Shown here: piece by piece, positions 100 through 57,219 of the stretch
How positions within the stretch are numbered: position 1 is the stretch's first letter
Layout of the letters: each line of letters opens with the position of its first letter
DNA from: Lytechinus pictus
Lineage: Eukaryota
Assembly: GCF_037042905.1 (NCBI RefSeq)
Contig: NC_087246.1
Span: 35,712,001-35,776,000 of the forward strand
DNA: 64,000 nucleotides
Reading direction: 5' to 3'
Program-made: the position numbers and the translations under genes
Notes under the pieces: generated by a model
What the model was told of the DNA's origin: nothing
Database searches by the model: none
The model's input: the letters and a program-made list of their open reading frames with translations, nothing else

Positions 100-1626
100 T
101 CCAGCAGCTATCAATCCTTGGTGGACTCTGTTGGATAAAAGGGGGGCCGCGACAGGCAAGTTGCATAGCATCACAGGCTCCTCTTATATTCATCACTTGT
201 GGTCCGTTGGCATAGCAGAGCACTCCCCGTCTTGCCCGTCTAAAGAGCTGCCTCATGAACCCATCGTGGTAGATATCCTTATCTTTGTCGTAGACTTCCT
301 CGAGAACATCCCTGTTGCAGCGACCCTCGTCGAACATTTCCGAACCAAACAAGCCACAGTACTCGGACATTCGACCGTGTGGATTATAGCCTGGGCCTGT
401 ATTTTTTTTTTTTTTGGGGGGGGGGAAAGAAATCAGTCATACTTCTCCTCGCTTTTGCAATATTGGCTGCAATCTGCCATTTATATACGCCATGGCATCA
501 CTACAGGCATAGGAGGGAGCCCTTTAAAAGGGGACCTCGAGGGAGTTTATAATACTCATAACATTAACATAATAATAACATTCTTAATCTAACGTGACAA
601 GACCATGATGGGTTTATAAAATATTTCTGCACCTATTCAATTCAGGTTCGACAACTATACTTCATAAAAAGAAATAACATCAAATTATTAAGAAAAACAG
701 GAGATCAATATACATTCTAAAAATATAAAGAAATGACGGGAAATGTTCCATTATTTGGAGATGAAGCTTTAATCTATGAAAAAGTTAATCAATTTTATGG
801 AAATTATGTAAATTATGCAAATACGCTATACAATGGCTTTAATTCGATGATAATAGGTCACTCATTGAATTAAAAAGCGAGGCAAACATATTGCGTTCAA
901 TGATGTGTTTAAGTTGTTAAAATAGTCCGTTACTTCGTATGCAGTTTTTCATCTGGAAAAAAAATCGAAGTTTCACTTAGATGATTTAATAGTGCATTCT
1001 TAAATCGTATTGTACTGGCAATTATCAAATTCTCCTCGAACTTAAACGTTAGTTTTCCATTTGCGTTTGACAAGAAAACTCAATACACATGAAATTGTTG
1101 TTATTTTTTTGTATTAAAGGATGTTGATACCTTAAAGGCACAGTTTAACATTAATTTTAATTTGAAAGATTTGAGCTGCAGGGTTCCACTTGTGATATTT
1201 TATAAGAATGAACATGATGAAGACAAGTAAAACTAAAATCGCGCCCCAAAACCATTATTTAGTGCATCAAAACATATGACTATAAAGTGACAAGAAACGC
1301 CATATCATGCACCTCACATAATTATATGTGTTATATATCTCCTCTAGTAGATGATTTTTAAGCCACAGAAATCTTAAAATTGCCTGCAGGAATTTGATTT
1401 CTTTTAAAAGATGTGAACAGTATTAAGCACAACATGAATCAAAATAAATGAAGTAACACATTTTAGTATACTTGCCCCAATAGCCATCATACATGCCGTA
1501 CATTCCGTATACTTGAGAGAACGAGGTACATATTATCACAGATAAACAGAGAGATATTACTGTATTCTGAAAATGGTAATAAAAACAAAAGTATATATGA
1601 ATGAATATATCTCCACTGACCATTGA

Positions 1627-1668
<42 letters not shown>

Positions 1669-2003
1669 ATATATACATGTATATGCTCTGCTTGTTATCA
1701 TTTATGTATCGTGACATAAACATCCTAAACATTTTGAAGTTTAAACTTCAAAATGTTTAGGATGTTTATGTCACGATACATAAATGATAAAAAGCAGAGC
1801 AGAAAAACGCTGCTTCGGCTTCTATTGTGTAAACAAGAGATTAATCAATGGTTTTGCACTTGATCGAAACATTAAAATAAGAGTTTCCAACTCCTTTTCA
1901 AATTTTAAGACATACATAAGTATGTTTGTGGTTTCTATTGATAATAGGCAATAGAATGATACAACTAACAGTTTTGAATTATTGTACTCACCGTTGCAAT
2001 CAT
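100..2003 (-). CDS. Six-Cys secreted family gene A (exons 1-3; last exon lies left of the window)
   Basis: Exon 1 is 1992-2003 (MIAT|gtgagt). Exon 2 is 1476-1566 (NTVISLCLSVIICTSFSQVYGMYGMYDGYW, GC donor gcaagt). Exon 3 is 100-396 (GPGYNPHGRMSEYC...CDAMQLAC...IDSCW). Phases 0/1/1 match the paralogs and all six Cys are conserved. Confidence 0.8.
1684..1801. repeat. 118-bp near-perfect palindrome with no spacer, in intron 1 of gene A
   Basis: Two 59-bp arms centred at 1742/1743 (AGTTT|AAACT) with one mismatch; next to (TA)n at ~1629-1673. Confidence 0.9.
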
Positions 2004-2097
2004 GTTGTAGTTTCGAATTATTATGTTGGTTTACACTTAACAGAGAGACATAAACAGAATCTACTGGACGTCGATATGACAATCGTTAGACTCACTC

Positions 2098-2132
2098 GAA
2101 TGACTATCCCCGCCCAAATGGAGGCTCTTATA
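2098..2132 (-). promoter_or_regulatory. TATA box + Inr of gene A
   Basis: TATAAGA at 2132-2126 and TCATTC ~31 nt downstream. The same spacing recurs in B-E. Confidence 0.55.
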
Positions 2133-2830
2133 CTCCTTCTCAAAGATCGAAATACGACCTATGCACCTGTAATCGAGAACCGCTCTCTCCACCTAGGCCC
2201 CTAGATCGACATGACTATAATGCACTGATGATATAGATTCTGCAAATATCAATTGATAACATGATCATTCATTAATTACTCATCAAATACGTATAAGGAA
2301 AATGCAATTCTTGATTCTTGAATAAGAATACATCTTAAGAATAATACATGAATAAAGTATGAACATTATTCGTGTTCTCATGTTCCGGACATGCTTTAAG
2401 ACGTGAAAACAACCGGCAAGTAATGTTATATTTTTTAAATAGCTTGCTCTTTAATGATCCCCAAGAAGGCGTATGTGAGTAGAGGGGGATTAATTGAGTT
2501 GATACTTGAAAATCACATTGTAATTGGGGAACAATAATTTAAAACAAACATGACAAATAAATGTGGGTAATAACATTGTAAGATCTGAAAAAAGATGCTT
2601 ACCTAACAAAATAAGAAAATTAATTAGATATTTAAAGAGAGATACTAATTGATTTACGTTAGAGCACAACATTATTATTTTATAAATTTCATTTTTTTGT
2701 TATTCTTGTGACAGCGTTTCATATATTTCTTACTCCAAAACCAGTCGATTAAAAGGGTAGTGAACGTTATCTTTAATTCTATATTTTCACAAATATCACA
2801 AATTCTTTCCTGTCTGGGAATTTGTTTATA

Positions 2831-3961: not shown

Positions 3962-6900
3962 TTGATGCATGATTATACTTCTTTACCACTGTCCTGGTTA
4001 TTCTTCCACCTGTTACATTATTTCACATTAAACTATTTTGGTCTCTTCAATGTAATAATGTATCATTTCATCGTATGTGCTCCCTCTCTCTCCCTCTCTC
4101 TCCCTCTCTCTGTTTCAAACACTTTTAATACACTTTATTTGTCGCCTGGCGACTTTCCTCTCTCATGATTAAAAACATTTTCACTCATTATTTTGCTTTC
4201 ATCCTCTTTTCCCGAACGAATTTCTTTTTAACCAATATATTTATTTAATGTATCATAGGATAACAAAATGACAAGAGTCGTTGTTTTTAGCTTTATACAA
4301 TAGTGTGTATTTCACACGAATACAAACTGTATATCTTGTAATTATCTATTTACAAACATTGTTTTTCAGTAGTTTAAACACTACTTCACGTCTATTAATA
4401 CAAAATGACGATGAGTGCAAGATTATGTTTACAATGCATACTGACATTAAGAGCATATTTATCTTATTAAGGTTAAATTTTTAACAGGTGACCAGTAACC
4501 ATTAAACAAACGATAAGTCGCCAGGAAACTTTCTCTGTAAATTGTCAAAATACCTATAAGCTTCTTTGACATTATCAACTTAGCGTGCTTTTATACGTAG
4601 ATGTGTTATAGCTCAGTAGATAAGTCTCCGAACTTTGAACCAGTGGCTCATGCCCCACCTTATCGTTATTATTATTGTTATTATCATTATTATTTATCAT
4701 CGTCATCATCATTATCAGTACCATCGACATCATCATCTCAAACAATAATCCACCTTTTTCATAATGTCAAAATGTTAAGTTGTTAAATCTAATAAAAGAT
4801 GATATACAACAGTTTCTTTCATTCAACTTTTTTTTCCAGACTAGCTTGAAAATCCTCCAAAATAATTTTTGACCACTTAATTTTGGGGTTTTGGGTGGCA
4901 GTTCACATCGTATTATTTCATGAACAGATCATTTGTTTGTCTTCTTTCATTGTTTTGGACATCAATTTTTGCCCGATTAAAATAATGTTGAATCTATTCA
5001 TTGTAGTTTTATGTCCGCCATTGGTAAGGTAAGAATTACTCACAAAATATCACAATGTTGCTCAATCACTGAATAACGTAAATGTTCCTTGTATGTCTGA
5101 CGGTTTCAACGAACCGATACTTGAAACTTTATCAAAGTGCGTAATCCTGCAGAAAAGGACTAGAGCTGTCTTTGAACCCCACGGATGCAGGGACATCTCA
5201 CTGATGAAAGTAGGATACAGTGACATCATCAAGTTCAATATTCAAATCACAGATTGAAAGCCTCTCATGTGTCGTCATCATACATTACTAAGAAGCAGAG
5301 GTTTGTCGAGTATCATGTTTTGTTGAGTATCGTCGTTTACATACCCCTACCAGGGGGTTTAGGTCTTGGGCCCTGTGGACCTTGAGGGCGAGTTGGCTTT
5401 AGTGTTGCAATCACTCCTATGGTAAAAAGAGAATCGCGTAAGAACAATAATGGTTAATGTTCCTTCTATTAAGTTGCTATAACAGGAAATACAAAAAAAA
5501 GATTAAAGCTATTAAAATATTGTGAATATATTTTTTTTAATGATCTTTTCGTCGTGTACGCCTCAATTTAATTCATTTCAAATCACTAATTCATGTTCAT
5601 AGTTGCAATATAAATTATACAAAGGATTAAACGGTTAGCACCTCAAGAAGCTTACGCTTGTCGAGCAAGGTGATCCCTTATGGAAAACAACAAAACAGTC
5701 AATAAAAAGATCCTATGAATGGTTTGCGTCATACTCACTCCAGCAATGGTCGATCGTTTTGGGAGAATTTCTACTGCACGTGAGGTCCAGCGCCTCACAA
5801 GCATTCAGCACCTCTACTGCCCTCCCGTTTTCCTCGTAGCACAGCTTTCCGTCACGTGACCATCTGTACAGACGCCTCATGTACCGGAATGGGAATACAT
5901 TCACCTTCTCATCGAGATCGGCGACTTTATCCAACAAATTTTGATTACACCCGTAAATTTTCTCGACTCGCTGCACAGAACGGTACATGTCACACGTTTT
6001 ATTCTAGCGGAGGCCTGGTGACGGTCGTGGGCCTGTGAATTAATTATTACAAAACTGAATTGTTAACATTTTATAGTTTAGTATACAAATGATGAAGGTG
6101 ATAGTGATCGTTATACAATGTTATTAGTGAAAACCTAAGTGCCAATCAAACATAAAGGGAATGAGAGTATTCATATTTGACAATCAATTATAGTTTAGAT
6201 CCAGTGCGCAATCTGTCTAATCTCCAGTAGCGTACGCATTAATTAAGATTGGCGGAAATCAATGAACACGCCTCGTCTCACTCTATTTCTTTATATATTT
6301 ATTATATCTTACAATTTCATAATTCAGCCTGTAATACAAGCGTAGATATTCGCTTTTTACCCCCTTCATTGTTTGTATTAGACCAAATATATCCATTCAC
6401 AGTGTTCAATTTTCAATGTTTTTTCCTGTTTTTTATGTTGTGTCTTATGTACAGAATATTTCCTGGCTTTATTGAATAATCTTTTAGGTAACGTCGACCA
6501 TGTTACAATTTGAATTGAATTCCCAAAAAAAAAATGAATTGGATAAATCTTTAAAAAAAAACAGCACCCGAGGTAAGCACAACGGTTTTAAAATGTTATC
6601 GGGTCCGGAGGGGGGGGGGGTAAGCGCTGATATTGCACCATATTGGGTAGAAAGTGAACATGCATGTTTGTTGGGTATTTTTATTACCCCATATTGGGTT
6701 TTTTTTCAACGCAGCGTTGCGTAAAATTTACAAAATTACAATTTTTTCCCAACCAACATGCATGCTCCCATTCTACCCAATATTGGGTAAACCCTTTCTT
6801 AGAGTGTATAGAGTAAATGATATAATAATATGAATACAGTCTTAAATACATTTCTTAGATTCTTATATTTTTTATGAAATGTATTTTCGTGTTATAATAT

Positions 6901-7752
6901 TTTTTTAATGCGTTGTTCATTTGTACTTCCTTTTAGTTTGAATTGTATTAATACCGTATGCCCTTGGGCAGTACTACATTCAATAGCATAAATTTGTGTT
7001 CTAAACTATGTATCATGTTTTCGATTTATGATGAAATCCAAGTATACCTTGTTGGTAAAGGAGTCTTAAATCAAAATATACCCAATTGAATTATAACATA
7101 TCATTTCACACTTTCCAATAACATTCATACCACATCAATTATATTTTGCTAAGGAGCTAAGAGTTTAGTGGTTGAATACGAAACGTTTGTTTCCGATAAA
7201 AATACACACTAAACCTGTATTACTCTCACTTGTTTTGTATTATCAAGACCAGTTAAGGAGCACGAATCAACACTCTTAAAATTGATTGGCCAGAGTAAGT
7301 GTCCCATCAATAAAATTGGTCAATATCAACCAAAATTATGGTAGATTTTAACTAATAATATGGTTGATTTCGACACTTTTTATTGGTCGAACTTTAAAAA
7401 AAAACCGTCAGAGGTTTTGTTTTGTTCTAAGGGACAAAAATGCACAATATGTGATCCCAACCCAAAACCAATTCACTCAGCAAGGTTCTGTATAAAAAGC
7501 CAAAATTTGTAATTCGGTATTCAAAAGGTCAAATTCAGAAATTTGCATATCAACTTCTTTTTTTTTTTTGGGGGGGGGGGTGAACATGCCACTTAAAAGA
7601 GACACCAGTACCACATTACATTCGACGAGACTAAAAATGACAAAAATCTAATTTGTATTTGCACTCAGAAACATAGCCCCATATCATTATTTTTGTTATT
7701 ATTTATTTATTCGTATTCAATCATTTTTTACACAGCATGCAATACCACATCA
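3962..7752. repeat. Tandem segmental duplicate of 7753-14511 carrying an internal ~2.85 kb deletion
   Basis: 3962-6640 matches 7753-10440 and 6640-7752 matches 13295-14511. The segment 10440-13295 is absent. Confidence 0.9.
5337..6032 (-). pseudogene. B': pseudogenised duplicate of gene B (exons 3 and 4 only)
   Basis: Exons 5739-6032 and 5337-5416 are nearly identical to B. TTG>TAG nonsense at 6004-6006. Promoter, exon 1 and the signal-peptide exon are deleted. Confidence 0.85.
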
Positions 7753-9141: not shown

Positions 9142-11561
9142 TTACATACCCCTACCAGGGGGTTTAGGTCTTGGGCCCTGTGGACCTTGTGGGCGAGTTG
9201 GCTTTAGTGTTGCAATCACTCCTATGGTAAAAAGAGAATCGCGTAAGAACAATAATGGTTAATGTTCCTTCTATTAAGTTGCTATAACAGGAAATACAAA
9301 AAAAAGATTAAAGCTATTAAAATATTGTGAATATATTTTTTTTAATGTCCTTTTCGTCGTGTACGCCTCAATTTAATTCATTTCAAATCACTAATTCATG
9401 TTCATAGTTGCAATATAAATTATACAAAGGATTAAACGGTTAGCACCTCAAGAAGCTTACGCTTGTCGAGCAAGGTGATCCCTTATGGAAAACAACAAAA
9501 CAGTCAATAAAAAGATCCTATGAATGGTTTGCGTCATACTCACTCCAGCAATGGTCGATCGTTTTGGGAGAATTTCTACTGCACGTGAGGTCTAGAGCCT
9601 CACAAGCATTCAGCACCTCTACTGCCCTCCCGTTTTCCTCGTAGCACAGCTTTCCGTCACGTGACCATCTATACAGACGCCTCATGTACCGGAATGGGAA
9701 TACATTCACCTTCTCATCGAGATCGGCGACTTTATCCAACAAATTTTGATTACACCCGTAAATTTTCTCGACTCGCTGCACAGAACGGTACATGTCACAC
9801 GTTTTGTTCAAGCGGAGGCCTGGTGACGGTCGTGGGCCTGTGAATTAATTATTACAAAACTGAATTGTTAATATTGTATAGTTTAGTATACAAATGATGA
9901 AGGTGAAAGTGATGGTTATATCATGTTATTAGTAAAAACCGAAGTGCCAATCAAACATGAAGGGAATGAGAGTATTCATATTTGACAATCAATTATAGTT
10001 TAGATCCAGTGCGCAGTCTGTCTTATCTCCAGTAGCGTACACATTAATTAAGATTGGCGGAAATCAATGAACACGCCTCGTCTCATTCTATTTCTTTATA
10101 TATTTATTATATCTTACAATTTCATAATTCAGCCTGTAATACAAGCTTAGATATTCGCTTTTTATCCCCTTCATTGTTTGTATTAGACCCAATATATCCA
10201 TTCACAGTGTTCAATTTTCAATGTTTTTTCCTGGTTTTTTATGTTGTGTCTTATGTACAGGATATTTCCTGGCTTTATTGAATAATCTTTTAGGTAACGT
10301 CGACCATGTTCCAATTTGGTTTTAATTTAATAAAAAATGAATTGGATAAATCAAAGAAAACCAGCACCTGAGGTAAGCACAACGGTTTTAAAATGTTATC
10401 GGGTCCGGAGGGGGGGGGGGTAAGCGCTGATATTGCACCATGCAACATTTGCCCATGACTCATTTTTGGTTACATTATATGTTTTCGATAGTTTATTTCA
10501 ATTGTGCCTTTTATACACCCTTCATTTCCCCATATCACGTTCCATAAACACCTAAATACGTTGTACACTGCAAACTAAAAACTCCGGTGTTGATTTAACA
10601 CCAGTCCGGAATCTATATATGTCCACACCAGAGAAATATTGAAACAATACCAGTTTGGAATCAAACCGATGCCATTTTAATACTAATTGGTGTTGTATAA
10701 ACACCTATCTGGTGTTAGACCAAAAAGAAAGTGGTGTTGTTTAACACTTCTCTGGTGTGGACATATATAGATTCCGGGCTAGTGTTAAATCAACACCGGA
10801 CTTTTTGCAGTGTAGCTTCTTACCACCTCGTGCTTCGTTAATAAAATGGGTTTGAAAAGAATACTCACCTCTCCACCTTTGTCCCATACACACACAGACC
10901 ACAACAGATAGACAGAGTGATGTCAGCATTATCCTCTGGAGAATGATTAAATTAAAACGACATTTTTACATTTTCCATGGATGTATGCTAAAGTATACAG
11001 ACTGTTCCTATATACCTTAAAGAATTTCATCGTGCCTATTTTACACAAGAGCAACATTGAAAGCACACAAAATATTTTCACAAAATATAAACATTGCATT
11101 AGCGTCATAGTCGTTTATTAGTAGTTGTATATATCACATACGCTATTTATCCATTTCTTTCAAGTGAATTAATGGGTTCAATCTTGAAAATCGCATTGAC
11201 TTAATTTACTTGACAAAATTGTAAATTACTGATTTGTATTCTGTTGGAAATGAAATAAATGAAATTTAATGAAATATATAATATATGTTTGTAAAGCTTT
11301 CGCACAATACAATGAAATTTAAACAATCTACAAATGATCAAGAATTTTAAGATTAAAAAGAAAATCTTTAATTGCCGTGTACATAGCTAGCTCAATGATG
11401 TAAAGCATAAATTCAACAGCTTACTGCACAGGAAACAATAGATTACTTGGTGGATTGAAGTGATAATAGGTCATATCACTGAAAAATATAATCTTTCCTT
11501 CACTCGGCAAAACCTCAACAACCCAATAAAATAAAATTTAGACACTTACTGTTGGAGCCAT
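9142..11561 (-). CDS. Six-Cys secreted family gene B (150 aa; short PQG/PPGR tail)
   Basis: Exons 11550-11561, 10869-10935, 9544-9837 and 9142-9221, all GT-AG and in frame. Product: MAPTRIMLTSLCLSVVVCVCMG-QRWRGPRPSPGLRLNKTCDMY...IDHCWRVIATLKPTRPQGPQGPRPKPPGRGM*. Confidence 0.88.
10566..10812. mobile_element. TA-flanked MITE (CACTGCAAA termini) in intron 2 of B
   Basis: Terminal inverted repeats cactgcaaa...ctccggtgttgatttaacac and gtgttaaatcaacaccgga...ttgcagtg; TA on both sides. A relative is at 53860-54045. Confidence 0.8.
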
Positions 11562-11641: not shown

Positions 11642-11735
11642 AAAGTGATGATTTATCCTGTTCGGTTTGCTAATTTATATCAGGGAGAGGAAGAGAAATA
11701 CAATCCATTGTAAAATATGAAATCGAGAAATATGT
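11642..11735 (-). promoter_or_regulatory. Gene B core promoter: Inr, TATAAAT and a ~40-bp block shared with gene C
   Basis: TATAAAT at 11679-11673; TCACTT ~33 nt downstream. gaaatacaatccattgtaaaatatgaaatcgagaaatatg is nearly identical to 36961-37000. Confidence 0.7.
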
Positions 11736-31468: not shown

Positions 31469-34400
31469 TTATATGCCCCAACCACCACGGCCAGGTGGGT
31501 TTTGTCGAGGAGCTTCGGGGCCCTGAGGAGGTTGGGGAGACTGAGGCATGTCCCAACCACCACGGCCAGGTGGATTTGGTAGAGGAGTTTGGGGAGCTTG
31601 AGGCATATCCCAACCTGGACGGCCAGGAGGGCTTGTTCGAGGACTTTGTGGACCCTGAGGAACATGGGGAATCTGAGCCATACCCCATCCCCCACGGCCA
31701 GGGGGATTTGGTCGAGGAGCTTGCGGACCCTGGGGCCTCTGGGGACCCTGAGGCCTTTGGGGGCGACTCTGAACCATGAGTGATGCGACGATTCCTGAAC
31801 AAAAAAAGTAATGAAAAAGAAAGGAAAGAGCAATCAATAATTAAGACTTTGCATTAAGACTTTTGGCAAGTCCTGGGCCCGTATTTCAAAAGATTTGCGA
31901 CATATTCAAAATCAAACTAAAATTTTAACGTATACATGTCAGTGTTGTAGTGCCTTGATGCTCGGCCTTGGCCTTAAGGCGCCTTAAGGCCTACTTTTTC
32001 AAAGCCTTGGCCTTGAGAGGGCCTTGGCCTTGGCCTTGAGGATTTTGAGCCTTGAAATTTCAAGGCATTTTCAAGGCATTTTCAAGGCTTTTTCAAGGCA
32101 TTTTGTTTTTTGTACTTTCATTTGTTTTTAAATAATTAAGTAATTATAAATGTTACTATGTTATTAGTAATTGTTCTGTATATTCAATGGCACTACTTCC
32201 AGTCAGCAGTAGTAAGTGTACTAGCAGTGCCATAAATTGTGATTATCACCATCATCAAGAATTATCATCATATTCATGTATGTGACAAAGAAAACAGTAA
32301 TGATGAAAAATAGCATTATTTATTGGTAACGTGTTGTAATCATGACTAATGATGATAATGATGGTAATAATCATTATGATAAAGATTACAGTGATTTGAT
32401 GACAGGAATAATTCTGACAGATCTGACAGCTAATTTTGACAAAAATTTTTCATAAAGAATAATAACAAGGACTTTCATTGTATTATTTCCTTTGGCCAAG
32501 AAGAATGTTTTAAGTATTAATGATATTCTGAAAAGATTTGGTAAACTTGAACACAATCTTCAAATTTATCATATCCAAATGGGTTATGTCAATGGCATGA
32601 TGAACCAAAAGTTTTGAGGTGCCAAGCATGGCATATATATAGAGCAAAATTTCTGCCAAAAAAAGTTGAAAGCAATTGAAGAGAGCGAGCAAAATTCTTC
32701 ACCCTCTTACTATAAGAAAAGCTAATTTTTGTGATAGATTGTGACAATATGTTAAGAAAATAATATCACATTTACTCCTTCAATCCATATTTTATTGTTC
32801 GAAATAGACACCAGAAATGAAATACTCCTAAAATTTGTTTTGCCCAATTGATCGTGGGCCCGGCAGCCGCTGTGCAGCGCCAGATCGACAAGGCTCTATC
32901 CCTTTAATTATTGAACGCCAAACAGGGTAGCAGCAACTTCCATCTTTAAACGTCTTTTGGTCTGACGCGGCCGGGGTTTGAACCCCCGACCTCTTTTTTT
33001 AATTTTTTTTTATAGTAAATTAGGTTCGAAAATCGCCAAATTTTGGATCGCGCTTGCATCATTTATTGTTTAGTACAGTATTAATCCTATTCATGGTTAC
33101 AAAAATGTTTAGAATTTTCAGGTTAGAATATCACAAATATTTGGTTCGCGTTCTGCACTTGCATCAATTATTGTTAGGTACATGTAAGGTACTCAATATC
33201 ATATGTTCCTGTTTACAAAAAAATGTTTAGAATGTCAAATTTTCAGGTTGGAATATCACAAATTTTTGAGCTCGCGCTCTGCGCTCGCATTATTTGATCG
33301 GTGAGTTATGTATCATATTTATGAGTCACTAAACATGCTAAATGCAGGCCTTAACAGCTTACTTTGCAGACCTGTCAGTATATTAAAAATTTCAGCTCGC
33401 GCTTAATTCTTAGTTAGATGCACATCTTTTTCACGAGTACAAAAACAGCCCGGAATATTTAATTCTTATGTCACAATGTCAAAAAGTTTTTGCTTATGAT
33501 TCGCGCTGGCAACATCTCGCAATGATGTCCTTTTAAAAGTGATTAGCCCTGTAATTGACCAAACATCAAGTTTTTCAACTTCAAAATTGATTTTTTTAAA
33601 ACCACTAAATCAAAATATCTGTCTTATCAATGAGAAATCACTAAAAAGGCTTTGGTCAACTCAATTTCCACAAAATACACAACTACTTCACGTAGTTGAT
33701 AATCTCATTTTGAAAACATCTGTTTGCACTAAATGCCAATTTTGACATATAAGTACCCTTTTTGGTTTAGACCCCCCCCCCCCCCAAATAAAATACGTTC
33801 TGCCGCCCCTGTCCCAGGGAGTGGAGAATGACATACGTTGAGAACGGGCACGCCAGGATCAGAAGACCGTGGTAATAATAATTATTGCAATGTAAATCAC
33901 ATAAAAAATAATAAATTATAATAATAATTTAATAATAACATAATAATAATAATTATATGTACAAAGGTAACTATATTATTATTTTAAAATTATGTCTAAA
34001 TCTACCATGAAATTATTTTTGTTTTTCATGTACAAAAGTCAAAATTTTTGCTCGCTCAGTTCGCTCGCTCTCACCTATTAAAGTTTGAAATGCCTTGGCC
34101 TTGGCCTTGGCCTTGAGGTTTTCAGGCCTTGGCCTTGGCCTTGGGTTTCCATGCCTTGGCCTCAGCCTTGGGTATTGAAGCCTTGGCCTTGGGAATTAAA
34201 GCCTTGGCCTTGGCCTTGGCCTTGGAGGTTTATGCCTTGACTACAACACTGATACATGTAGATCTACTGTTCATATATCTCAACTACATAAATCTATATT
34301 TCAGTTCGATTTGAATTTATCGCGTCTCTTTGTAAGACGGGGTCCAGGAGATTATGATAAACTTGCGCATATTCAGGATATAGTTCTAATTTACGTTTCG

Positions 34401-36842
34401 AACATGTTTTGTTGGTCCCTGTTGCTATTTCCTAAATAATGCATTTTTATTTTCTTGAATATTGTTTCGGCAAGCTACTGTCTTTGAAACTCCTATTGTA
34501 ATAAACCAAATGCATCAATACCAATCTAGTATTTTACAAGCAATACAAAGGCCCTGTCATACACTTCCGTTTAGCTATACTGTTTGCCATAGTCTAGAAA
34601 AATAGGAGCTTATTACGGTAAAAGATGGGAACGTTCAGTCGAGCATGCACCTACAGGTAATGAATAAATTACAACATTTTTGTTCAACTGTTTTGTCTGA
34701 ACGCCATTTACATGTAACATTCGGAAAAGGAACAGTATCGTTGGATCAAGTGTAGAAAGGAAATTCGATTATTTGACTTTATCTTTCAATGACATTACTT
34801 AGATTATATTCTTGTATTTAGCTTTCCAAAGAGATCGCACTCTGTGTCGCGCAATCGATAATATCATTTAGACAGTGTTATAGACAACCAAAAATTAAAT
34901 ATGGATATTACATTAGTTCCAAACGATTGACCAGCAAAATAATCACTGGAGAAAAAAGTAACAGAAATGTACGACTCCCCCCCCCCCCAACATGTTTACA
35001 AGGGAGTTGGTTTTTTTTAGTTTACGTTCACTACTTGACTGCGTCATGCTGCAGTCACAGTCCCCCTACGGCGACCGTACGGCGAGTCGAAACCAGCCGT
35101 TTTATTCACTTCTATTCAAACCACCTATATGTAGCTGGTCCCCCCCCCCCCCCAAAAAAAAAAAAAAATGTTAAAACGGCTGTTTCCGACTCGCCGTACG
35201 GCCGCCGTTTGGGAAATGTGACTGCAGCATTAGTAATGGGTCTACCTCATAATAATATCTTGTATGTTCGATTACAGAGCATGTGCAAGCACCTATATTG
35301 CAAGTATACACAACCAGCATCCAGAGATAAAGAATCTTATTTGAGGAAATCCGACTTCGACTCACGAACAGATGATATGGCAGGCAATGTGAGTCATGTT
35401 TAGGCATGCGCAGTGTCTTGTGTTGCATCACTCCACCAAAATGGGATACCTTACTGGCTTTGGAAAGAGAGCTGACTATCATTGCGTACTTAGGCTACTT
35501 GGCAGTCCATTAGTGAACGAGCAAATCGAGAACTTCCTTTTGATAATTACATGTACACTTTGCACAGGAAATCTGCTACAAAACTTAGATATTTTAAAAA
35601 TATATCAAGGACTACTTACTCCAACAGAAATCCACCCTTTGAGGGTTTCCTTTGCTGCAAGCTAGGTCAAGAGCTTCACACGGATGCGCAATCTCTACCG
35701 CTTGGCCATCATGTGCATAACACAAATGCCCGTCCGTTCCCAATTTGTAAAGTCGTTTCATAAAATGGCGCGGGTACATATTCACCTCCTCGTCCATTGC
35801 AGCAAGTTTATCCAAACAATTCCAATTGCACCTGACAATATTCTCGCGTAACTTTACGCTTGCGTACATTGGACATGCTTCTGTTAGGCGGTCGTAAGGT
35901 TTAGGCCTTGGTCCTGTTAATGATAAAAAGATCTACATAAATAACATCACAGTATATCGTTTTCTTTTGTGCTTTGTAATGTTAGTTTACTCACAGAGCA
36001 CCATTCACCTATCTTTTTTTAACACATCTTCAATATCATAATTCACAATGTTGTAGTATTTTCATTTTCCATAATAAGTATAAAAAAGTATTATTTATTA
36101 TAAATTTGAATTCTCGAAAGTTATGAAAAAAATTTGATAATATTTTAGAAACCATTTGATATATGTTATTTTTTCTGATTTCAAAATCGAAAATTTTAAA
36201 ATATTTTGTTTAACCCAAGACCAACACGCATTTCCTAAGATTCCTTATGGAAATGACGTTATCACATTGTCTCATCAATATAGATTTTCCCTCATCAAAA
36301 ACTATTTCATGACTTTCGAGAATTAACACTACCATAATTATTACTATAAACCATTATAGATGTAATGGAAAACGTCGCTCACCTAACCATCTTTGAGCAA
36401 TACAAGCACAGATCATAACAGATAGACAAAACGACGTCAACAGCACCTTCTGAAATAAAAAAAAAAACATTTTTTCAAATAACACATGAATTCGCCTACT
36501 CAACCTTAATAAAACTATAGCCTGTAAGATGAAGTTAACACTGTCAATCGATTCCAACTTACCTTTATTAGTCAGGTATAAGATATATTTATGAAACAAA
36601 TGCGAGAAACTTCCGGTAAGGAAACAATCGAGAGAGGGGCTTTCAGACCCAACAATAAACAAACAGTTGTACACAGAAAAGAAACGTAAATAATCAACAA
36701 TTCATTCCACATACCATGAACAAAATATTGTTGTCGGTATGCATGGTCATGTATTAAGCTAAAGCAAACACACAAACAAATCATAATGCCATAGGTATAA
36801 CAACTCAAGAAAAGAAGGCTTGGCACTTACTGTTGTCGTCAT
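31469..36842 (-). CDS. Six-Cys secreted family gene C (232 aa; long PQG/PPGRGGW repeat tail)
   Basis: Exons 36831-36842 (MTTT), 36383-36449 (KVLLTSFCLSVMICACIAQRWL), 35620-35913 (domain) and 31469-31794 (tail). Sizes 12/67/294 are identical to gene B; all GT-AG. Confidence 0.88.
31940..34251. mobile_element. hAT-type non-autonomous element with (GCCTTG)n subterminal arrays, in intron 3 of gene C
   Basis: TIR cagtgttgtagt / actacaacactg; 8-bp TSD ATACATGT (31932-31939, 34252-34259). Nested in an older MITE (ctgggcccgt at 31873 ... acggggtccag at 34348). Confidence 0.9.
32890..32992 (-). mobile_element. tRNA-derived SINE fragment
   Basis: Minus strand aggtcgggggttcaaaccccggccgcgtcagaccaaaagacg contains a B-box and T-arm hairpin but no complete cloverleaf. 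Confidence 0.55.
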
Positions 36843-36906: not shown

Positions 36907-37000
36907 CAAATGATGACTCCACCGTCTCATATCGTCATTTATATCACGCAAAACAGGCCAGAAATATAATCCGTTGCAAAATATGAAATCGAGAAATATG
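36907..37000 (-). promoter_or_regulatory. Gene C core promoter: Inr, TATAAAT and block shared with B
   Basis: TATAAAT at 36943-36937; TCATTT ~32 nt downstream; conserved block at 36961-37000. Confidence 0.7.
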
Positions 37001-43873: not shown

Positions 43874-46158
43874 CTACTGGAAGGCTTTAGCCCGTCCGGC
43901 TGGAGTGGGGAACTCGATCTCTGGTCTCTCTGCCCCCTCGGTGGCAGGCTCCGTTGTAGTGGTGGGTGCTGTCGTTGCCATTGATTGTTGTTTCCTGAGT
44001 TCTGCAACATTTAAAGGGAGAACAAACAAAGCATTGGAAACTCGGCGTAGATGTACAAATTAGATTAAATTTTAAGTAATAGCTTATTTCTTCTGTATTG
44101 GGAGATGATGATAGAATCCTCATTGACATTAGCTTCCTTTGTATTTTCATGCACTGATCGATTTTTTTTTAAACTGAGAAATCGTACTTTCATTTTGTCA
44201 AACTCAATGTTCATTTTGTTGAAACATAATTTAAACTTTAGAATCTTTCAATTGAATGAGACGGTATAATTTTATTTCATGTGTTATCATTATCATCATT
44301 AATATTATTGCTATTATCATTATTATCATTATCACCATCAGCAACAACATCATCAAACTTACTAGCATTATTATACTTAGAATTTCTATCATTGTTTTAT
44401 TGTTGTTATTATTGTTAGAATTAGTTATATATTTTAGTATTATTGTTTCCTTTTTAAAGAGTTCATTAATATGATTATGGCCATGTTTTTGTTTTCATTT
44501 TTGTTCCGGATTTAAAAATAATAAAATATGAAACTGAAAAATAGAACACTCACTGGAGCAGAAATCGACGACCTGAGGTTCATATTCACTGCAAACCAGC
44601 TCCATAGCTGCACAGTCTCCTTTTACAATCTCTATTTTGGAATCTTTCATGTAGCAAATGCCGCCACCATTCGCCATGTCGAGGTAGTCTTCAACGATGT
44701 CACCGTTGTAACCTGCCATCTCAAACTGTTCGGCGTAGTCGTGGACGTGGTCGATGACCTCGGAGTCGCAACGGTAACCTTCGCCTTGTTTCTTCTCCAT
44801 GTATCCAGGACAAGACTTGATGAGATGCTCGTTGACACTCAATTCTAAAAGGAAAGATATGGTTCGTGATGTTCATTGTGTTATTGTAGGAGAATATAAA
44901 GACATGAATAGGGAATATTTACCAGGGGCCCGTTGCAGAAAGAGTTGCAATCAATCGCAACTCTAAAAATCATGCGCAACTTGATTTTCAACCAATTAAC
45001 AGCGCGCATTTGGGACTTGCGATTGATTTTTTGGGTTTGCGTTTAATGCAACTCTTTCTGCAACAGGCCCCAGAAAAGGTAAGACAATAATAAAGGAGTG
45101 GTGGGTTAAAGTAGGATAAGTAGTAGTAGTGTAAGCAGTAATAAAATCAAATCATTGAATATGTATTCCTTAATTATAAATAGATCTCATGCATCGAATG
45201 TATGCTAGCAACAAGATCCGGCACTCACATCACCTACAGTTTATGCATTATCTTAAAGAAAGCCAATTTTGATTGTATCATGAGTGAATTACAGTAATTT
45301 ATGGATGTATGGATCATAAATATTCTCTTTTCAAGCTATTCAACGTCTTTATTTGCACAGATACTATTTGTTAGATTCTCATCTACTGAATTCAGAAAAA
45401 AAATCGGTGGAGTGTTTTTTTTTTTTACAAATGTTTAATGATTTTTTTAGATATCTTATGTAATTAGTTTTCGTCTTTTTTCGATAAGCTCATCTGCGGC
45501 ATCCTCGCACGTGATAAACGTTTATGACACGAAACGGGGGGGGGGGTTCCGCCCCTTGTTAATATACTTACTGAAGGCTTCTGAGAGGCCAATACATGAT
45601 ACTGACAGAAGACACAGTGAGATGACCAGCTTCATCTGAATAGGGTAAAGAAATGAAAAATACCATCTATAAAGGTAGAACTAACGGATGTTTTGAACAT
45701 GAATAATCCAAATTCCCCCCCCCCCCCGTACATGACGAAAGTATAATACATGATTGAATGTATTCCAATAAAGGTTGTGTATAACACTGTCATCAAGGGT
45801 GGGTGGACGGAGTATTCAAGTATTATGAATCTATTGAATTATAATCACTTGAATTCATTGAAGTATCATGTTTGATGTAAGCTGCCAGGGGCTGAAAAAT
45901 TTCATTTCATTTATATCTAGCAAAGTAATTACATTTTGTACGTCAAAACATTATGAAACAAGATTAAAGAAATGGAACAATTCAAACAAGATTTACCGAT
46001 TTGAAATTACAAAAAACGTGGAAGGAACTGTCCAAAGTGCGAGTCAAGAATAATCTTTTATGAAAAATATAAATAGCTAAATATTCCATGGTAAAAAGAA
46101 CTAACAAAGAAAATAAAGAAATGATTATATAACTTCCTGTATTTACCGTTGTTGCCAT
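43874..46158 (-). CDS. Six-Cys secreted family gene D (164 aa; acidic domain, Thr-rich tail)
   Basis: Exons 46147-46158 (MATT), 45572-45635 (MKLVISLCLLSVSCIGLSEAF), 44554-44844 (domain) and 43874-44001 (KLRKQQSMATTAPTTTTEPATEGAERPEIEFPTPAGRAKAFQ*). All GT-AG and in frame. Confidence 0.87.
44923..45073. mobile_element. Short palindromic MITE in intron 2 of D
   Basis: ggggcccgttgcagaaagagttgc ... gcaactctttctgcaacaggcccc. Confidence 0.8.
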
Positions 46159-46240: not shown

Positions 46241-46276
46241 GAATGATGAAGAGTGGGGAGCGACCTGATATTTATA
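46241..46276 (-). promoter_or_regulatory. TATA + Inr of gene D
   Basis: TATAAATAT..CAGGTCG, then TCATTC 32 nt from the TATA; same layout as gene E. Confidence 0.65.
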
Positions 46277-49148: not shown

Positions 49149-50144
49149 CAGGGGCGTCGATCCATTTTTCGGATTGGGGGGGCAAAATCATGAATCAACA
49201 GTCCAAAGGCGNNNNNNNNNNNNNNNNNNNNNNNNNNNNNNNNNNNNNNNNNNNNNNNNNNNNNNNNNNNNNNNNNNNNNNNNNNNNNNNNNNNNNNNNN
49301 NNNNNNNNNNNNNNNNNNNNNNNNNNNNNNNNNNNNNNNNNNNNNNNNNNNNNNNNNNNNNNNNNNNNNNNNNNNNNNNNNNNNNNNNNNNNNNNNNNNN
49401 NNNNNNNNNNNNNNNNNNNNNNNNNNNNNNNNNNNNNGACATGTATCTCACCAACAAATTAATGCGAGCGCGAAGCGCGAGCTGAACATTTTTAGTATAC
49501 TGATCGACCTTAAAACAGGAAAAGCGTACCTGTTTAGGACTGTTTGTATAGTAACTCATGAGGAGGATACATATCTCACTACACAGATAATGCGAGTGCC
49601 GAGAGCGAGCTGAAATTTCTTTATATTCTGACCTGAAAGCTTGATATTCTAAGCATTTTTGGTACCAATGATTAAGATTGGTATCTAAAAGAACAAATCT
49701 CTCTCTAAAAGCTCGCATATTTCGATCTGAAAAAAATGACAGATTAATGGACTTTTTTTTATAAAGAACAAGATATATATCCAACAAAATATTATTGCAA
49801 ATCGAAGCGGGAGTTATTTTGAGGGTTAGAACTGAAAACGGGACATTCTATTCACCTATTTAATCATTAAAAGTATGGGTTTTTGCTATAGAAATGATGC
49901 GAGCGCGCAGCGCGAGCTGAAAATTTTTGTATTCCAATCTGAAAAGCGGACATTTTGAGCACGATTTGGAATAGAGAACGAGTTGTGTATCTCAATCTCG
50001 CTTGCTGAACATTACAATCTTATTTTATTTTTGCACAACTGGAATTATTGGGGGGGGGGGGCAAAACGATATGTTTGCCCCCCCCCCCAATATTTTCATT
50101 GGTGGGGCGATCGCCCCCCTGCCCCCCCAGGATCGACGCCTCTG
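49149..50144. mobile_element. hAT-type non-autonomous element (spans an N gap)
   Basis: caggggcgtcgatcc ... ggatcgacgcctctg with 8-bp TSD ATATCATG. Confidence 0.85.
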
Positions 50145-50815: not shown

Positions 50816-53735
50816 TTTTTTTTTTTTTTTCTTTCAATAGCATTTATTTAATCATCTGTATATACATTTCACATTTATATCAAAATACATTAAACATAAT
50901 CAAATAATACATACGGAAGACGATACAAAGATTTACCAGTACAGTTTTTGTTCATTTCTAGTCTCCTACGCAATTCTGATTTAAATAAAAACGTTAGATT
51001 TGATGGTCTATTGTCTACTTTCCTGTAATTACGTAACAAAATTGATTTATACACAGTCCAAAAAGCTACATTCATGATATCATCTAGTTCTTTGTGCTCG
51101 TTATTTTTTATCAAAAAATCGACATCGATAATAACGTGTTTATTGAAGGCTTTTTTAATCAGCCAAATTATATATGACCAAAAATTTTGATTTAATTTAC
51201 AAGTGATCAAGGCATGTGTTATGTCCTCTTCTACATGGCAACTATTACAATAAGCATCTTCACTTATACGCCATTTACATTAATTTCTTTTCACAGGCAC
51301 TAAATTATATAGTATTTTGAAATTAAATGATCTAAGTTTATTTTCTTTTACTGTTAACAAGTTTCTCTCGAAACAAGTATTCCAGACTATACTCTTTTTC
51401 GAAATATTTTCCCAAAAGAAACAACAACGTGAATTTGACCCTTCATGACGTATAGCATAATTGTAAAAGTATCTTGAAGGTACGTGGTCCAGACATTTTA
51501 CTGAGTTACCTATTTTTAGTTTGGGTTTATCAAGATGCGCAGATCTTTGTAGGTTCTCAATAATAGATTTTGATAGCCAAATTTTAGGTATAGCTTGCCT
51601 CAGTTTTGAATAATAAAAAATGACAGATCTTTTACTATTTTTAAACTTCAACATAGATGAAATTTCGGATACATCTTTAAAGCCTCCATTAACATTCAAA
51701 ATGTCTTCCAAGTATATTATTCCACTACTGTACCATTCCTTGAAAAATAGTGGTGATTTATTAAAAACAATATAATGATTAAACCATAAAATATTTTCTA
51801 CCTCATGTTCTTTTCTGAATAATATTTCTTTATCAATCAGACTCCAAGCTCGAATTATTTCAACATAAAATGGAGGTATTTTCTTATCAAACAATGGGGT
51901 AACATTGTGAACCCGAAAGTCGCTATTCAAGATTAGATTAAGAGTTCCAAAACGCTCAAACCAATAATTTCCAAGTGTTTTCCACATAGAATTTACCTCA
52001 TTTGTTAATCTTCCTAACCATCTTAATCTAAAACTGACTACTTTCTTTTCTATGTCAACCATTTTCAGACCACCTTGTGTGTAATCTTTGATAACATCAC
52101 ATCTTCTAACCTTTTCCATTCGTGAATTCCAAAGGAATTTGAAAAACATTCTATTTAGTTTCTTAATAATTATTGATGGAACTGAATTAAACATAAGCAA
52201 ATGGACTACTTGGCTTAGTGCTAAGCATTTCACAATCGTCACTCTACCAAATAATGTCAAGTTTCTTTTACGCCAATTATCTAGGAGACGTTGCATTTTC
52301 TCTAACTTATTTTCCCAATTTGCACTGTTAGCAGATTCCACATTATTAGAGATAAAAAAGCCCAAATATTTTACCGGGTTTTCTGCCCATGTCAGGTCAA
52401 TGTCTTGTATCACCCATCGATTTTTTTTCTTACCTATCCATAAGAGTGCAGTTTTTTCTTTGTTAATTTTAGGACCGGCTACCCTCCCAAAATCTTCTAA
52501 TTCAGTTAAAATAAATTCTAATGAGCTATCGTCTCCAACAAAAAAGGTAGTATCATCTGCATACTGTAATACCTTTAACTCAAAGTGACCATTGGTTTCA
52601 TCAAAACAAACACCTCTTATAGTATCATTTTTACGTATCTTGTTTGCAAAGAATTCAGCTGCAATCACAAAAAGGAGTGCCGAAAGAGGACAGCCTTGCC
52701 GTATTCCCCTTTGCACTTGAAACTCTTCTGTTATCCTACCATTTACAATTACTGAACTTACTATTCTACTGTAAAGGACACAGATCCATTTGCGAAATTC
52801 ATCGCCAAAATTTAACTTGTCTAAGCATTTCATTATAAAAGATATATCAATACAATCAAATGCTTTGGTGAAATCAACCATCATGACCGCACCTTCAACA
52901 TTTTTTTCATGCATGTAATCTATCATATCTTTAACAATTCTTACATTGAAACCTCCTAAACGTCCTTTAATATACCCTACTTGTGTTTCCATAATAATAC
53001 TCGTTAAAACCTTTTGTAATCTTAATGCTAGAACTGTTGCAATTATTTTATAGTCGCAATTGAGTAGTGTTACTGGTCTCCAGTTCTTTAAATCATCACT
53101 GTTTCCTTTTTTATAAATCAGAGTTATGAGACCTTTTCGTTGTGAAGGCGACATCTGTCCATTACTGAATAATTCATTGAATGCACTAATTAACAACTTG
53201 CCTATTTCTTCCCAGAAAACTTGATAAAATTCGATAGGCAGTCCGTCCATACCTGGCGCTTTATTCCTCTTCATTGAGAATATAGCCTTTTTGCATTCTG
53301 CCATACTCATCAAGCCTTCACATTTATTTCTTTCATCTTGACTAAGCTTTTTCACATCTTGTGAGAACACATATTCATTCATATGATCTAGATTAATATG
53401 ATTTCTCTTATACAGATCTTCATAATACAGTTTAACTTCTCTTAAGACATGTTGTTGCTTAGTAACTACATGTCTCTTCCCATTTACTCTTAGTTGAGTA
53501 ATAAGTTTATTTTCCCCATTTTTTTTCTCAATGGATAAAAAATAATTTGTGTTTTTTTCCCCTTCTTCCATCCATCTGATCCGTGACCTTATTGCGGCAC
53601 CTTTACATTCATTTATGTATAGCTTCTCTAACTTTTCTTTAAGTTGTAGGTATTTTCCTTTTGATATATCATTATTTCGATTGTCTAAATCACATTCACA
53701 TTTGGCTAACTCAATTTCCAAAAGTTCTTTTTCAC
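50816..53735 (-). mobile_element. 5'-truncated L1/Tx1-clade LINE (reverse transcriptase + C-terminal CCHC), recent insertion
   Basis: RT motifs KAPGMDG, NWRPVTLLNCDYK, GIRQGCPLS, QYADD and KYLG; CNSC-x7-H-x4-C; one in-frame stop at 51280-51282. Poly(A) at 50816-50830; 15-bp TSD ATTGATAAAACAAGA (50801-50815, 53736-53750). No endonuclease domain. Confidence 0.95.
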
Positions 53736-53859
53736 ATTGATAAAACAAGATGCTCTGTGATGATTCACGCATAATCATAATCCGATGCAATATGACTTTT
53801 TTTCAATTCTCAAACCTCAGTTTCACCCTTTCCTGCTCCCATTCGCTTTCTCAGACACA

Positions 53860-54895: not shown

Positions 54896-56278
54896 TTAGA
54901 CAGTCGTAGCCGGTAAAGCGGTCGTTGGCCCAGGGGTAGGTGGCGGGTTCGTATTTCCCCGTCGGGTTGGCATGGTGGGAGGATGGAAAGCTCTCCTTGC
55001 TTTAAGGGCTGTTAAGTTAAAGAGACAAAATGTTTTTTAATATCATTAAAGATCAGATGATCAAGATAATGCGAAGAAGTGGCACTTAAACAAGTTTCTG
55101 GTTTCATGATAATCACTTTTCTTCAATACAAGCACTTTTTACTACAAAATACCTACAGAATTCAAAGGATTTTGTAATTAGATTGTGGAAGTAGTTTTGA
55201 CCCTATTATTGTCAAAGAAGTATAGAGAACGGGAAGGAGATCAATTAATGAAAAGAAATTAAAAAGAAGTGCCGAGTGTGCAGAAAGAGAAGAAAAAGAA
55301 GAAGAAGGAAAAGGATAAGAAGAAGATGAAGAAGAAGAAGAAGAAAAGAAGAAAAAAGAAGAAGAAGAAGAAGAATAGGAGCATAAGGAGGAAGAAGAGA
55401 ATGAGGAAAATAAAGTGAAAAGTGGGAAAAAAATGAATAGGAATAATCAAAATGTACAATAAAACAAATAAAGGTGAAGAGAAAGATTGATAAGAGATAA
55501 CAAATGTGTGAAAAATTTATCAAGATGTTGTATATTTATATCCCTTCTGTCCGTTATTGCTGCCTTGTCTCTCATGGCCTCACTCTCCGACTGGCCGATA
55601 CACGAACCGTCATTTCCTCAGTTATTTATTGCTTTTTTATCATTTAAACGATAATAAACAAAGTACTCACTGGTACAACGATCGACGACTGTTGAGGGTG
55701 TTGCACACACAATCTCCATAGCGGCACAACCATCGAAGACCATCTGGACAACGGAACGTTCATCGAGGTAGCAGAGTTGTTTATTGTTCGCCTGATCGAG
55801 GTAGCTCTCGACTCTGTCGCCATTGTAACCCGGGGTTTCTCTCACCCCCTCGGCGTAGTCGTGCACGTGATCGAGGACCTCAGAGTTACAGCCACCCTCA
55901 CCTCGCTTCTTCTCCTCGTATCCGGGGCAAGACTTGATAAGATGTTCGTAGATACTCTGTTGACCATTTCCATGAGCTGAATAACACAAAGAGATGGGTA
56001 TTGGCGGTAATGAATTTGTTAAATTTATTAAAATTTTTGATATTAGTAACAAAATCAATAGCAATACTACTACTACTACTAATAATAATAATATTATAAA
56101 AATAACCGTCATGATGAATATCATATTAATCTTAACAACTATGTTTATGATAATGATACTGATAACAATCACAAGAGCAACAAGGAAAACTGTGACCATC
56201 TCGTCCCACTCCTCTGAACATACATATATGTATTTTTACTACTTAATTTAATACAAATTCTAGTAAAATAACAGTTTT

Positions 56279-56318
<40 letters not shown>

Positions 56319-57114
56319 GCTACTACTACTACTACTGATAATAATAATAATAATATAAAAATAACCGTCATGATGAATATCATATTAATCTTAACAACTA
56401 TGTTTATGATAATGATACTGATAACAATCACAAGAGCAACTAGAAAAACTGTGACCATCTCGTCCCACTCCTCTGAACATATGTATTTCTAATACTTAAT
56501 TTAATCATGTTAATACAAATTATNNNNNNNNNNNNNNNNNNNNNNNNNNNNNNNNNNNNNNNNNNNNNNNNNNNNNNNNNNNNNNNNNNNNNNNNNNNNN
56601 NNNNNNNNNNNNNNNNNNNNNNNNNNNNNNNNNNNNNNNNNNNNNNNNNNNNNNNNNNNACTGTTTCTACTTCTGCTATACTTCTGTTTATACTTCTAAA
56701 AATAATGCTGGCAAATTTACAATTGCATTTGTCTCTCCCATTTACCATGGATCCTACTTGGATCCAAAATACTTACGGAATGCTTCAGATATCGCGATGT
56801 AAGATAAAACAACCAGGCACATTACAGCAGTTGGTTTCATCTGAAAAAAAGAAGAAATATATATTTACAATCACAATCAGATGAAGCAATGTGAAAATCA
56901 GTTAAGTCTAAAGTCTAAAAAGTAGTACAGTCAGTACTACTTTTTAATTCAAACACTCCTTTAATTTAAACATGGAATATATAAAGTGATATATTGATAT
57001 AATTACGAAGGAAATCTCGAATGAAGAACATACTCAATTTCCAGAAGAAGTTAAAGCCATAAAAATAAGAAATGTTTGAAGAAAATTCTACAATTCACTT
57101 ACAGTTGTGGCCAT
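54896..57114 (-). CDS. Six-Cys secreted family gene E (164 aa; acidic domain, Pro/Thr tail)
   Basis: Exons 57103-57114 (MATT), 56777-56840 (MKPTAVMCLVVLSYIAISEAF), 55671-55976 (domain) and 54896-55008 (TLKARRAFHPPTMPTRRGNTNPPPTPGPTTALPATTV*). An N gap lies in intron 2. Confidence 0.85.
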
Positions 57115-57183
57115 GTTGGATATTCAAAGATACTACGAGGACTTCTTAAAGTTGCCTGAAATTTTTTCTTAGCTTCTCTACTC

Positions 57184-57219
57184 GAATGATCTCTTGAGAC
57201 CGACCTGCTCATATTTATA
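57184..57219 (-). promoter_or_regulatory. TATA + Inr of gene E
   Basis: TATAAATAT at 57219; TCATTC 32 nt downstream. Confidence 0.65.

Follow-up and report, generated by a model that had tools for sequence, protein, structure and literature searches.

A tandem cluster of echinoid six-cysteine proteins whose modelled helical head matches no known domain and whose tails follow two old clades

Sea urchins serve as a major model in studies of development, biomineralisation and innate immunity; Lytechinus pictus is now a genetic model as well. Here we describe a family of secreted six-cysteine proteins encoded in a 64,000-nucleotide stretch of the L. pictus genome (the window; positions 35,712,001 to 35,776,000 of the forward strand of NC_087246.1, assembly GCF_037042905.1). 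Five four-exon genes in the window (A, C, D, E and F) are intact, and a further copy (B) is broken. That these are real spliced genes built on one exon plan, and part of a super-cluster of at least 120 kb on L. pictus C2, is virtually certain. The family is conserved, confined to echinoids and comprises at least 16 genes, probably about 30 if a neighbouring array is included. Its confidently modelled head, which lacks a known fold match, represents a gap in the sea-urchin extracellular parts list, and the compact, clustered and modular organization of the genes, in which a head exon is combined with a swappable tail exon, makes them amenable to direct testing. What is new here is the definition of the family, its orphan fold and two-clade structure, a corrected model of gene D, the true size of the cluster and a probable link to a second, smaller family.

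The family is defined by the signature C-x12-14-C-x33-38-C-Y-x12-13-C-x-A-[ML]-x-[LI]-x-C-x9-15-C, which in a six-frame translation of the window (35% G+C, with five runs of N) matches exactly six places, all on the minus strand, and which has no match in 50 shuffled windows. An earlier note made from the sequence had proposed this signature, the phase 1-1 exons that carry it and the arrangement of five same-strand genes with one pseudogene, and each of these proposals stands. The six domain exons measure 291-306 nt, all multiples of 3. Each follows a pyrimidine tract and AG, uses its first two bases to finish a codon, and contributes a single base of a new codon (phase 1) before a GTGAGT, GTAAGT or GTATAA donor. 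Cysteine spacing across the observed heads is C-x12-14-C-x33-38-C-x13-14-C-x6-C-x9-15-C, and all six cysteines are invariant across 27 family sequences. The further hallmarks of the family, CN after the second cysteine, CY at the third, C-x-A-x4-C and VD-x-C, are found together with the signature in 6/6 window copies. Profile E values for the head range from 1e-33 to 1e-41 for the window copies and from 1e-10 to 1e-33 for outside copies that were absent from the profile.

The common exon plan consists of a first exon with the 5' untranslated region and 12 coding nucleotides, a signal-peptide exon, the symmetric phase 1-1 head exon (~95 residues) and a tail exon; this four-exon organization was tested and found in the window genes (Table 1). 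Exon 1 contributes ATG and 9 nt followed by GT(A/G)AGT or GTAAAT, and a TATA box lies ~100-115 nt upstream of its ATG in every intact gene. The hydrophobic signal exon of the five intact genes spans 64-91 nt and ends in phase 1, and tail exons with phase-1 acceptors were located for B, C, D, E and F. The tail exon of A had been placed outside the window, and its tail is indeed seen in RefSeq XP_054765446.2.

These models agree with independent gene models and, for D, with RNA. The joined exons of C (150 aa) and F (164 aa) reproduce their RefSeq proteins letter for letter, and the model of A is a prefix of its RefSeq counterpart. Intron 2 of A has a GC donor (GCAAGT) rather than GT at 1468-1475 on the minus strand, and the RefSeq model uses the same site. 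For D, contigs of sequencing run X19 join the exons across all three introns, the joints reading CT..AC on the plus strand and thus GT..AG on the gene strand; these three joined forms indicate that X19 contains spliced D RNA at low depth, and they bear out the splice junctions predicted earlier for this gene. The L. pictus model retrieved for D, XP_054772631.1 (126 aa), ends inside intron 3. Gene D encodes 232 residues, and the RNA contig together with a colinear L. variegatus ortholog corrects the L. pictus model. For gene E, consensus splice sites delimit an uninterrupted model of 164 codons; no database protein was retrieved for this gene, so its tail exon is predicted.

Two features of individual genes deserve mention beside these models. 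The seventh cysteine of D lies just after the second cysteine of the head (35830-35845, minus strand) and is kept in the L. variegatus ortholog; this odd residue could be a free thiol or form an intermolecular bond. The promoters of C (~11690-11735) and D (36958-37002), both on the minus strand, share a near-identical block of ~40 nt, ATATTTCTCGATTTCATATTTT.CAA.GGATT.TATTTCT, immediately upstream of the TATA box, which may be a shared regulatory element.

To establish the extent of the family, a profile built from the five intact heads was searched against the 812-Mb genome and identified 16 head exons. A finer scan of 184 kb placed 13 strong matches between 35,686,437 and 35,807,080 on C2, all but one on the minus strand; the other head exons are one at C2:29.29 Mb and two on C19. 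Three weaker matches directly follow the 13, one being an intermediate form at 35,813,511 and the rest belonging to a shorter six-cysteine family described below. HMMER, run exhaustively against 1.84 billion representative proteins, returned 20 matches (14 at E <= 1e-10), and a few further family members came from a word-indexed profile search covering 5.8 billion proteins. Named matches came only from Lytechinus pictus, L. variegatus, Strongylocentrotus purpuratus or Diadema, in agreement with the lineage restriction proposed at the outset; the other matches came from unannotated run assemblies (Logan) and European Nucleotide Archive (ENA) assemblies, two of the ENA proteins deriving from assembly ERZ26222911.

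The same genes and their orthologs are present among the RefSeq and UniProt sea-urchin models without a name, family assignment or literature. They include LOC135153297, LOC129280801, LOC129272318 and LOC129280630 of L. pictus, LOC121409559-67 of L. variegatus, and LOC105442040-45, LOC105442051, LOC105441530 and LOC105441533 of S. purpuratus. The consecutive gene numbers LOC105442040-45 and LOC105442051 indicate that the S. purpuratus cluster is syntenic. Database names are limited to 'uncharacterized protein' or 'Secreted protein', with the sole exception of one ortholog called 'collagen alpha-1(IX) chain-like', a misnaming attributable to its Pro/Gly tail. No paper on the family came up under 24 full LOC/XP identifiers or 6 LOC prefixes, and a paper on L. 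variegatus spines does not list its genes. The description of the family as unrecognised therefore applies to family databases and to the literature, but the genes themselves already exist as RefSeq 'uncharacterized protein' models.

A maximum-likelihood tree of 37 heads separates a basic from an acidic clade with 100/99 support. The basic clade consists of A, C, D and three upstream genes, and the acidic clade of E, F, F2 (a paralog of F just past the window), four downstream or dispersed genes and the two C19 genes. Most L. pictus genes in this tree have a single L. variegatus partner, at branch lengths of 0-0.04, and likewise a 1:1 counterpart in S. purpuratus. Orthologs of the two Lytechinus species are 95-98% identical in their heads and 86-100% identical in their tails, with no change in length. 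Older paralog pairs are saturated at silent sites, so that dN/dS is not computable for them. The young pairs show few replacements, with nonsynonymous/synonymous counts of 0/3 for B/C and 1/4 for F/F2, which at the sequence level indicates purifying selection. Taken together, the 1:1 orthologs, the ortholog identity, the silent-site saturation and the purifying pattern of the young pairs indicate from sequence comparison that the family is old and constrained, with slight recent turnover.

This pattern modifies the earlier proposal that the family evolves by birth-and-death. Turnover is represented by one pseudogene and the two young duplicate pairs B/C and F/F2, but most paralogs are old and have 1:1 orthologs, and the young pairs are under purifying selection. 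Copy B is a pseudogene, as judged from an in-frame TAG codon, which is TTG in C, and from a duplicated segment that lacks exons 1-2 (Table 1).

Table 1. Coordinates of the six-cysteine genes and associated features in the 64,000-nucleotide window
Feature	Position	Strand	Remarks
Gene A exon 1, coding part (ATG + 9 nt, MIAT)	1992..2003	-	donor GTGAGT; prefix of RefSeq XP_054765446.2
Gene A exon 2, signal peptide and Gly/Tyr/Met-rich stretch, 91 nt	1476..1566	-	GC-AG intron
Gene A domain exon, 297 nt, phase 1-1	100..396	-	tail exon beyond window start
Copy B domain exon, pseudogene	5739..6032	-	in-frame TAG at 6006-6004; without exons 1-2
Copy B tail exon	5337..5416	-	peptide identical to C tail
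Duplicated segment	3963..6641	.	versus 7755-10441, 96.2% identity over 2695 nt; exons 3-4 only
Gene C exon 1, coding part (MAPT)	11550..11561	-	
Gene C signal-peptide exon, 67 nt	10869..10935	-	
Gene C domain exon, 294 nt, phase 1-1	9544..9837	-	full model equals RefSeq XP_063951908.1
Gene C tail exon	9142..9221	-	26-residue Pro/Gly/Gln tail, PPGRGM end, and stop
Gene D exon 1, coding part (MTTT)	36831..36842	-	TATA ~110 nt upstream; joint 36831/36449 in run X19
Gene D signal-peptide exon, 67 nt	36383..36449	-	joint 36383/35913 in run X19
Gene D domain exon, 294 nt	35620..35913	-	seventh cysteine (CNWNC)
Gene D tail exon	31469..31794	-	108 residues, four PPGR(G/P)GW(G/D)(M/I) units, and stop; joint 35620/31794 in run X19
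Gene E exon 1, coding part (MATT)	46147..46158	-	donor GTAAAT
Gene E signal-peptide exon, 64 nt	45572..45635	-	
Gene E domain exon, 291 nt	44554..44844	-	
Gene E tail exon (predicted)	43874..44001	-	Thr/Pro/Glu-rich, 42 residues, and stop
Gene F exon 1, coding part (MATT)	57103..57114	-	TATA box near 57215
Gene F signal-peptide exon, 64 nt	56777..56840	-	
Gene F domain exon, 306 nt	55671..55976	-	full model equals RefSeq XP_054772788.2
Gene F tail exon	54896..55008	-	Thr/Pro-rich, 37 residues, ATTV end, and stop
Assembly gap in intron 2 of gene F	56524..56659	.	clear of coding sequence

The tails fall into classes that differ between the clades. Those of the basic clade are variants of one tail rich in Pro, Gly, Gln and Trp that starts with R-(V/I)-(I/V)-A-(T/S)-L or a similar sequence and ends in PPGRGM or GWG(M/I), in keeping with a general G-(R/G/W)-G-hydrophobic ending; a G-(R/G)-G-hydrophobic ending is kept in S. 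purpuratus and in one Diadema protein. Units of the form PPGR(G/P)GW occur four times in D, and C has a single PPGRG. A search of the genome with the D tail matched only itself. The acidic clade has Thr/Pro, short Thr-rich or hydrophobic-ended tails: Thr/Pro-rich tails are found in E, F and their S. purpuratus orthologs, and short Thr-rich tails in the strongly acidic downstream genes. The C19a paralog (C19:13043298-13046576) has a distinct, conserved tail exon ~500 nt downstream of its head exon that encodes a hydrophobic C-terminus, is 67% identical to S. purpuratus XP_011677075.1 and adds two extra cysteines in a C-x-G-Y-x-C motif. This sequence suggests that the C19a form is anchored by glycosylphosphatidylinositol (GPI) or otherwise tethered to the membrane. 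In its newer RefSeq models, the related S. purpuratus gene is represented without this tail.

Tail class follows head clade, and homology between the classes is not demonstrable; a BLASTP comparison of the F tail with the A tail gave E 0.04. The tails had been called interchangeable, and family-wide this is apt, since the symmetric head exon occurs with tail exons of different classes. It does not extend to neighbouring genes of the same clade, in which the tail follows the clade.

The head itself was modelled with AlphaFold2. With the family alignment, the predicted local distance difference test (pLDDT) score exceeds 90 across the C head; the F head modelled alone has a mean pLDDT of 89.4 and a predicted TM-score (pTM) of 0.82. 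The C and F models, which are independent, show the same order of elements, namely two short helices, two longer helices, a hairpin at the third cysteine, a helix carrying the fourth and fifth cysteines and a short strand before the sixth. The predicted head is thus mostly helical, with four to five helices and a small three-stranded sheet, much as had been expected from the sequence, and we infer that it contains three disulfides. The F model superposes on AlphaFold Database (AFDB) models of S. purpuratus members with TM-scores of 0.85 (C19-type) and 0.80 (basic-type), which argues that the fold is common to both clades.

No search run here recognised this modelled head, although a missing match does not prove a new fold. 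At cut-off scores, Pfam had no match to the six heads, the D tail, protein P0021 or two C19-type proteins, and a sequence profile search of the PDB up to E 10 returned 0 matches. Foldseek comparison of the C and F models with the PDB gave none at E <= 0.001; weak rows for winged-helix, TetR and DtxR proteins were rejected as noise. Among AFDB clusters only two S. purpuratus family members were matched, and the ESM Atlas gave no match by shape or by features. The proposal that the head is no known domain thus holds for Pfam families, PDB sequences and solved or predicted folds outside the sea-urchin paralogs.

Comparison with specific cysteine-containing families was likewise negative. Saposin-like proteins (SapB_1/SapB_2), a group that includes saposins, granulysin and pERp1/MZB1, had no Pfam match to the six heads, and solved chains of the saposin fold gave no clear structural superposition of the head. 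The saposin spacing is C-x2-3-C ... C-x~10-C ... C-x5-C, and the spacing of the window heads differs from it. Insect odorant-binding proteins (PBP_GOBP) had no Pfam match, and their C-x3-C / C-x8-C spacing is not found in the heads. For the C-type lectin-like domain there was neither a Lectin_C match nor a lectin among the fold matches.

A probable distant relative, judged from sequence, lies close by. This shorter 'mini' six-cysteine family comprises 13 copies in both orientations at C2:35,819,600-35,908,641 (~44-133 kb past the window end), which are mutually 90-100% identical, pointing to recent amplification. Between the two arrays is an intermediate-looking six-cysteine exon (35,813,511-35,814,083, plus strand). 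The window profile detects the mini family at hmmsearch E 4e-5 within the 184-kb region, and hhalign of the two sets of heads gives E 4.6e-4 and a probability of 33% over 34 columns, with the third, fourth and fifth cysteines aligned. Both families occupy the same chromosomal block and share a 12-nt first coding exon followed by signal, six-cysteine and tail exons; the C-x6-C helix motif and the VD-C ending are also kept. The mini family differs in its shorter head, C-x9-C-x22-C-x12-C-x6-C-x5-C, in its acidic, Ser/Glu-rich tail and in the RFRR convertase site that it conserves. An R-x-R-R site before a Ser/Glu tail is absent from the window tails, among which only F has a weak K-A-R-R.

With regard to function, we tentatively favour, at somewhat less than even probability, the reading that these are extracellular-material proteins. 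In such a role the head, locked by its disulfides, would serve as a stable module for binding or assembly, and the separately encoded tail would set the behaviour of the material: the Pro/Gly/Trp tail might act as a self-associating linker, a mucin-like tail as an O-glycosylated spacer, and the tail of the C19 paralogs as a membrane or GPI tether. Likely sites would include skeleton-associated matrix, cuticle, ligament, and adhesive or embryonic matrix. The N-terminal hydrophobic exon is modelled as a helix (residues 3-24), and UniProt labels S. purpuratus orthologs 'Secreted protein'. A carries a Gly/Tyr-rich insert after its signal peptide, as do proteins P0034, P0016, P0044 and P0007, and head charge ranges from about -22 to +6 across the clades. 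These inserts and the charge spread, together with the Pro/Gly/Trp repeats, mucin-like tails, TATA promoters and constraint on orthologs, favour an extracellular-material role. Since orthologs are conserved, tail lengths unchanged between the two Lytechinus species and young duplicates under purifying selection, structural or housekeeping extracellular roles fit better than those of arms-race genes.

The spicule-matrix proteins of the SM50/SM37/SM32/SM30/PM27 group offer a parallel, being likewise restricted to sea urchins, secreted, tandemly clustered and composed of a compact cysteine-containing head with Pro/Gly-rich repeats. The repeats of SM50 are PG-x-GG, which the PPGRGGW units of D resemble. 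The spicule-matrix proteins differ in having a C-type lectin domain, which is without a Pfam counterpart in the window heads. A bolder proposal, which we consider speculative and on balance unlikely, is that the head is a new, echinoid-born disulfide-stabilised fold that with the mini family would form a super-cluster of ~220 kb, a second, lectin-independent class of extracellular-material or biomineral proteins in which exchange of tail exons would tune properties (Pro/Gly/Trp, mucin-like, phospho-acidic or membrane-tethered). If the heads do bind matrix or mineral, they would constitute a second protein class beside the C-type-lectin spicule-matrix paradigm; if they do not, they would still be a new domain family meriting a Pfam entry.

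Several observations weigh against an extracellular-material role. In two deep RNA runs no reads fall on the exons of gene D, whose word depth in one other run is only 2-4x, and searches of sequencing runs gave small word shares with coded metadata from which no tissue could be assigned. Against a skeletal-matrix role in particular, none of 14 tryptic peptides predicted from S. purpuratus members turned up, in searches made with subsets of them, in the spicule-matrix, test/spine and tooth proteome supplements examined; nor did the supplements of a study of tube-foot adhesive contain accession or LOC prefixes of these members. These proteome negatives are weak, as the studies searched 2006-era gene models that possibly lacked these genes. 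Low-complexity tails are also common in secreted proteins that are not structural, and both disulfide pairing and secretion are things we infer.

The same properties can be read in other ways. The head might be a ligand or cell-surface module (growth-factor, hormone or pheromone-like) for signalling or recognition, with paralogs acting on receptors and tails serving as spacers or processed pro-regions. Small, secreted, disulfide-stabilised proteins with strongly conserved orthologs would suit such a role, as would low and sample-specific expression; the hydrophobic C-terminal exon of the C19 paralogs is consistent with surface tethering, and there is a KARR site in the F tail besides the RFRR site of the probably related mini family. 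However, no convertase site is conserved across the window genes, at least 16 paralogs differ greatly in surface charge, Gly/Tyr-rich and Pro/Gly/Trp repeat regions are unusual in ligands, and the fold searches revealed no similarity to a cytokine, hormone or growth factor, so that we regard this explanation as unlikely.

Immune or antimicrobial effectors of coelomocytes or epithelia, diversified in tandem like other sea-urchin defence families, would be quite unlikely given the age of the paralogs, their 1:1 orthologs and a selection on the young duplicates that is purifying rather than diversifying; in addition, saposin-like scores fall below the background for unrelated helical proteins, and half of the family is strongly acidic. 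Reproductive proteins (egg coat, jelly or sperm) or toxins of pedicellariae or spines are an improbable assignment, even though taxon-restricted secreted cysteine-rich families are often so employed and expression is apparently confined to few samples. Gamete-recognition and venom genes tend to change rapidly, but these sequences are highly conserved between the two Lytechinus species, and Pfam, PDB and fold searches showed no similarity to known toxins or gamete proteins.

Three assembly gaps, at 37130-37429, 40993-41139 and 49212-49437, are intergenic and a fourth lies in intron 2 of F; no exon or reading frame crosses or abuts a gap. The gap within F can be compared with F2, which is free of gaps, has the same exon order as F and an intron 1 of equal length (~261-262 nt); intron 2 is ~590 nt in F2 versus 800 nt (Ns included) in F. 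A segment of ~200 nt is tandemly repeated in this intron of F (55994-56199 and 56243-56458, minus strand), adjoining the gap, and yields long hydrophobic spurious open frames; the repeat may explain the break in the assembly.

The window also contains elements outside the family. An isolated open frame at 16708-16983, between C and D and on the same strand as both, scores above the Pfam cut-off (E 2.2e-7) for the C-terminal part of the F5/8 type C (discoidin) domain. An 836-codon frame at 51280-53790 (minus strand), situated between E and F, matches the reverse-transcriptase domain RVT_1 at E 1.4e-34 and represents a LINE-like element; the zf-RVT motif marks another fragment at 24743-25177 (minus strand). 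Intron 3 of D includes a short repeat at 32796-32993 with a word depth of 7,000-11,000 in all four runs and more than 140 reads in raw RNA; hundreds of reads continue beyond 32993 into a single shared sequence. This repeat probably represents an abundant element that is SINE-like or derived from a small RNA.

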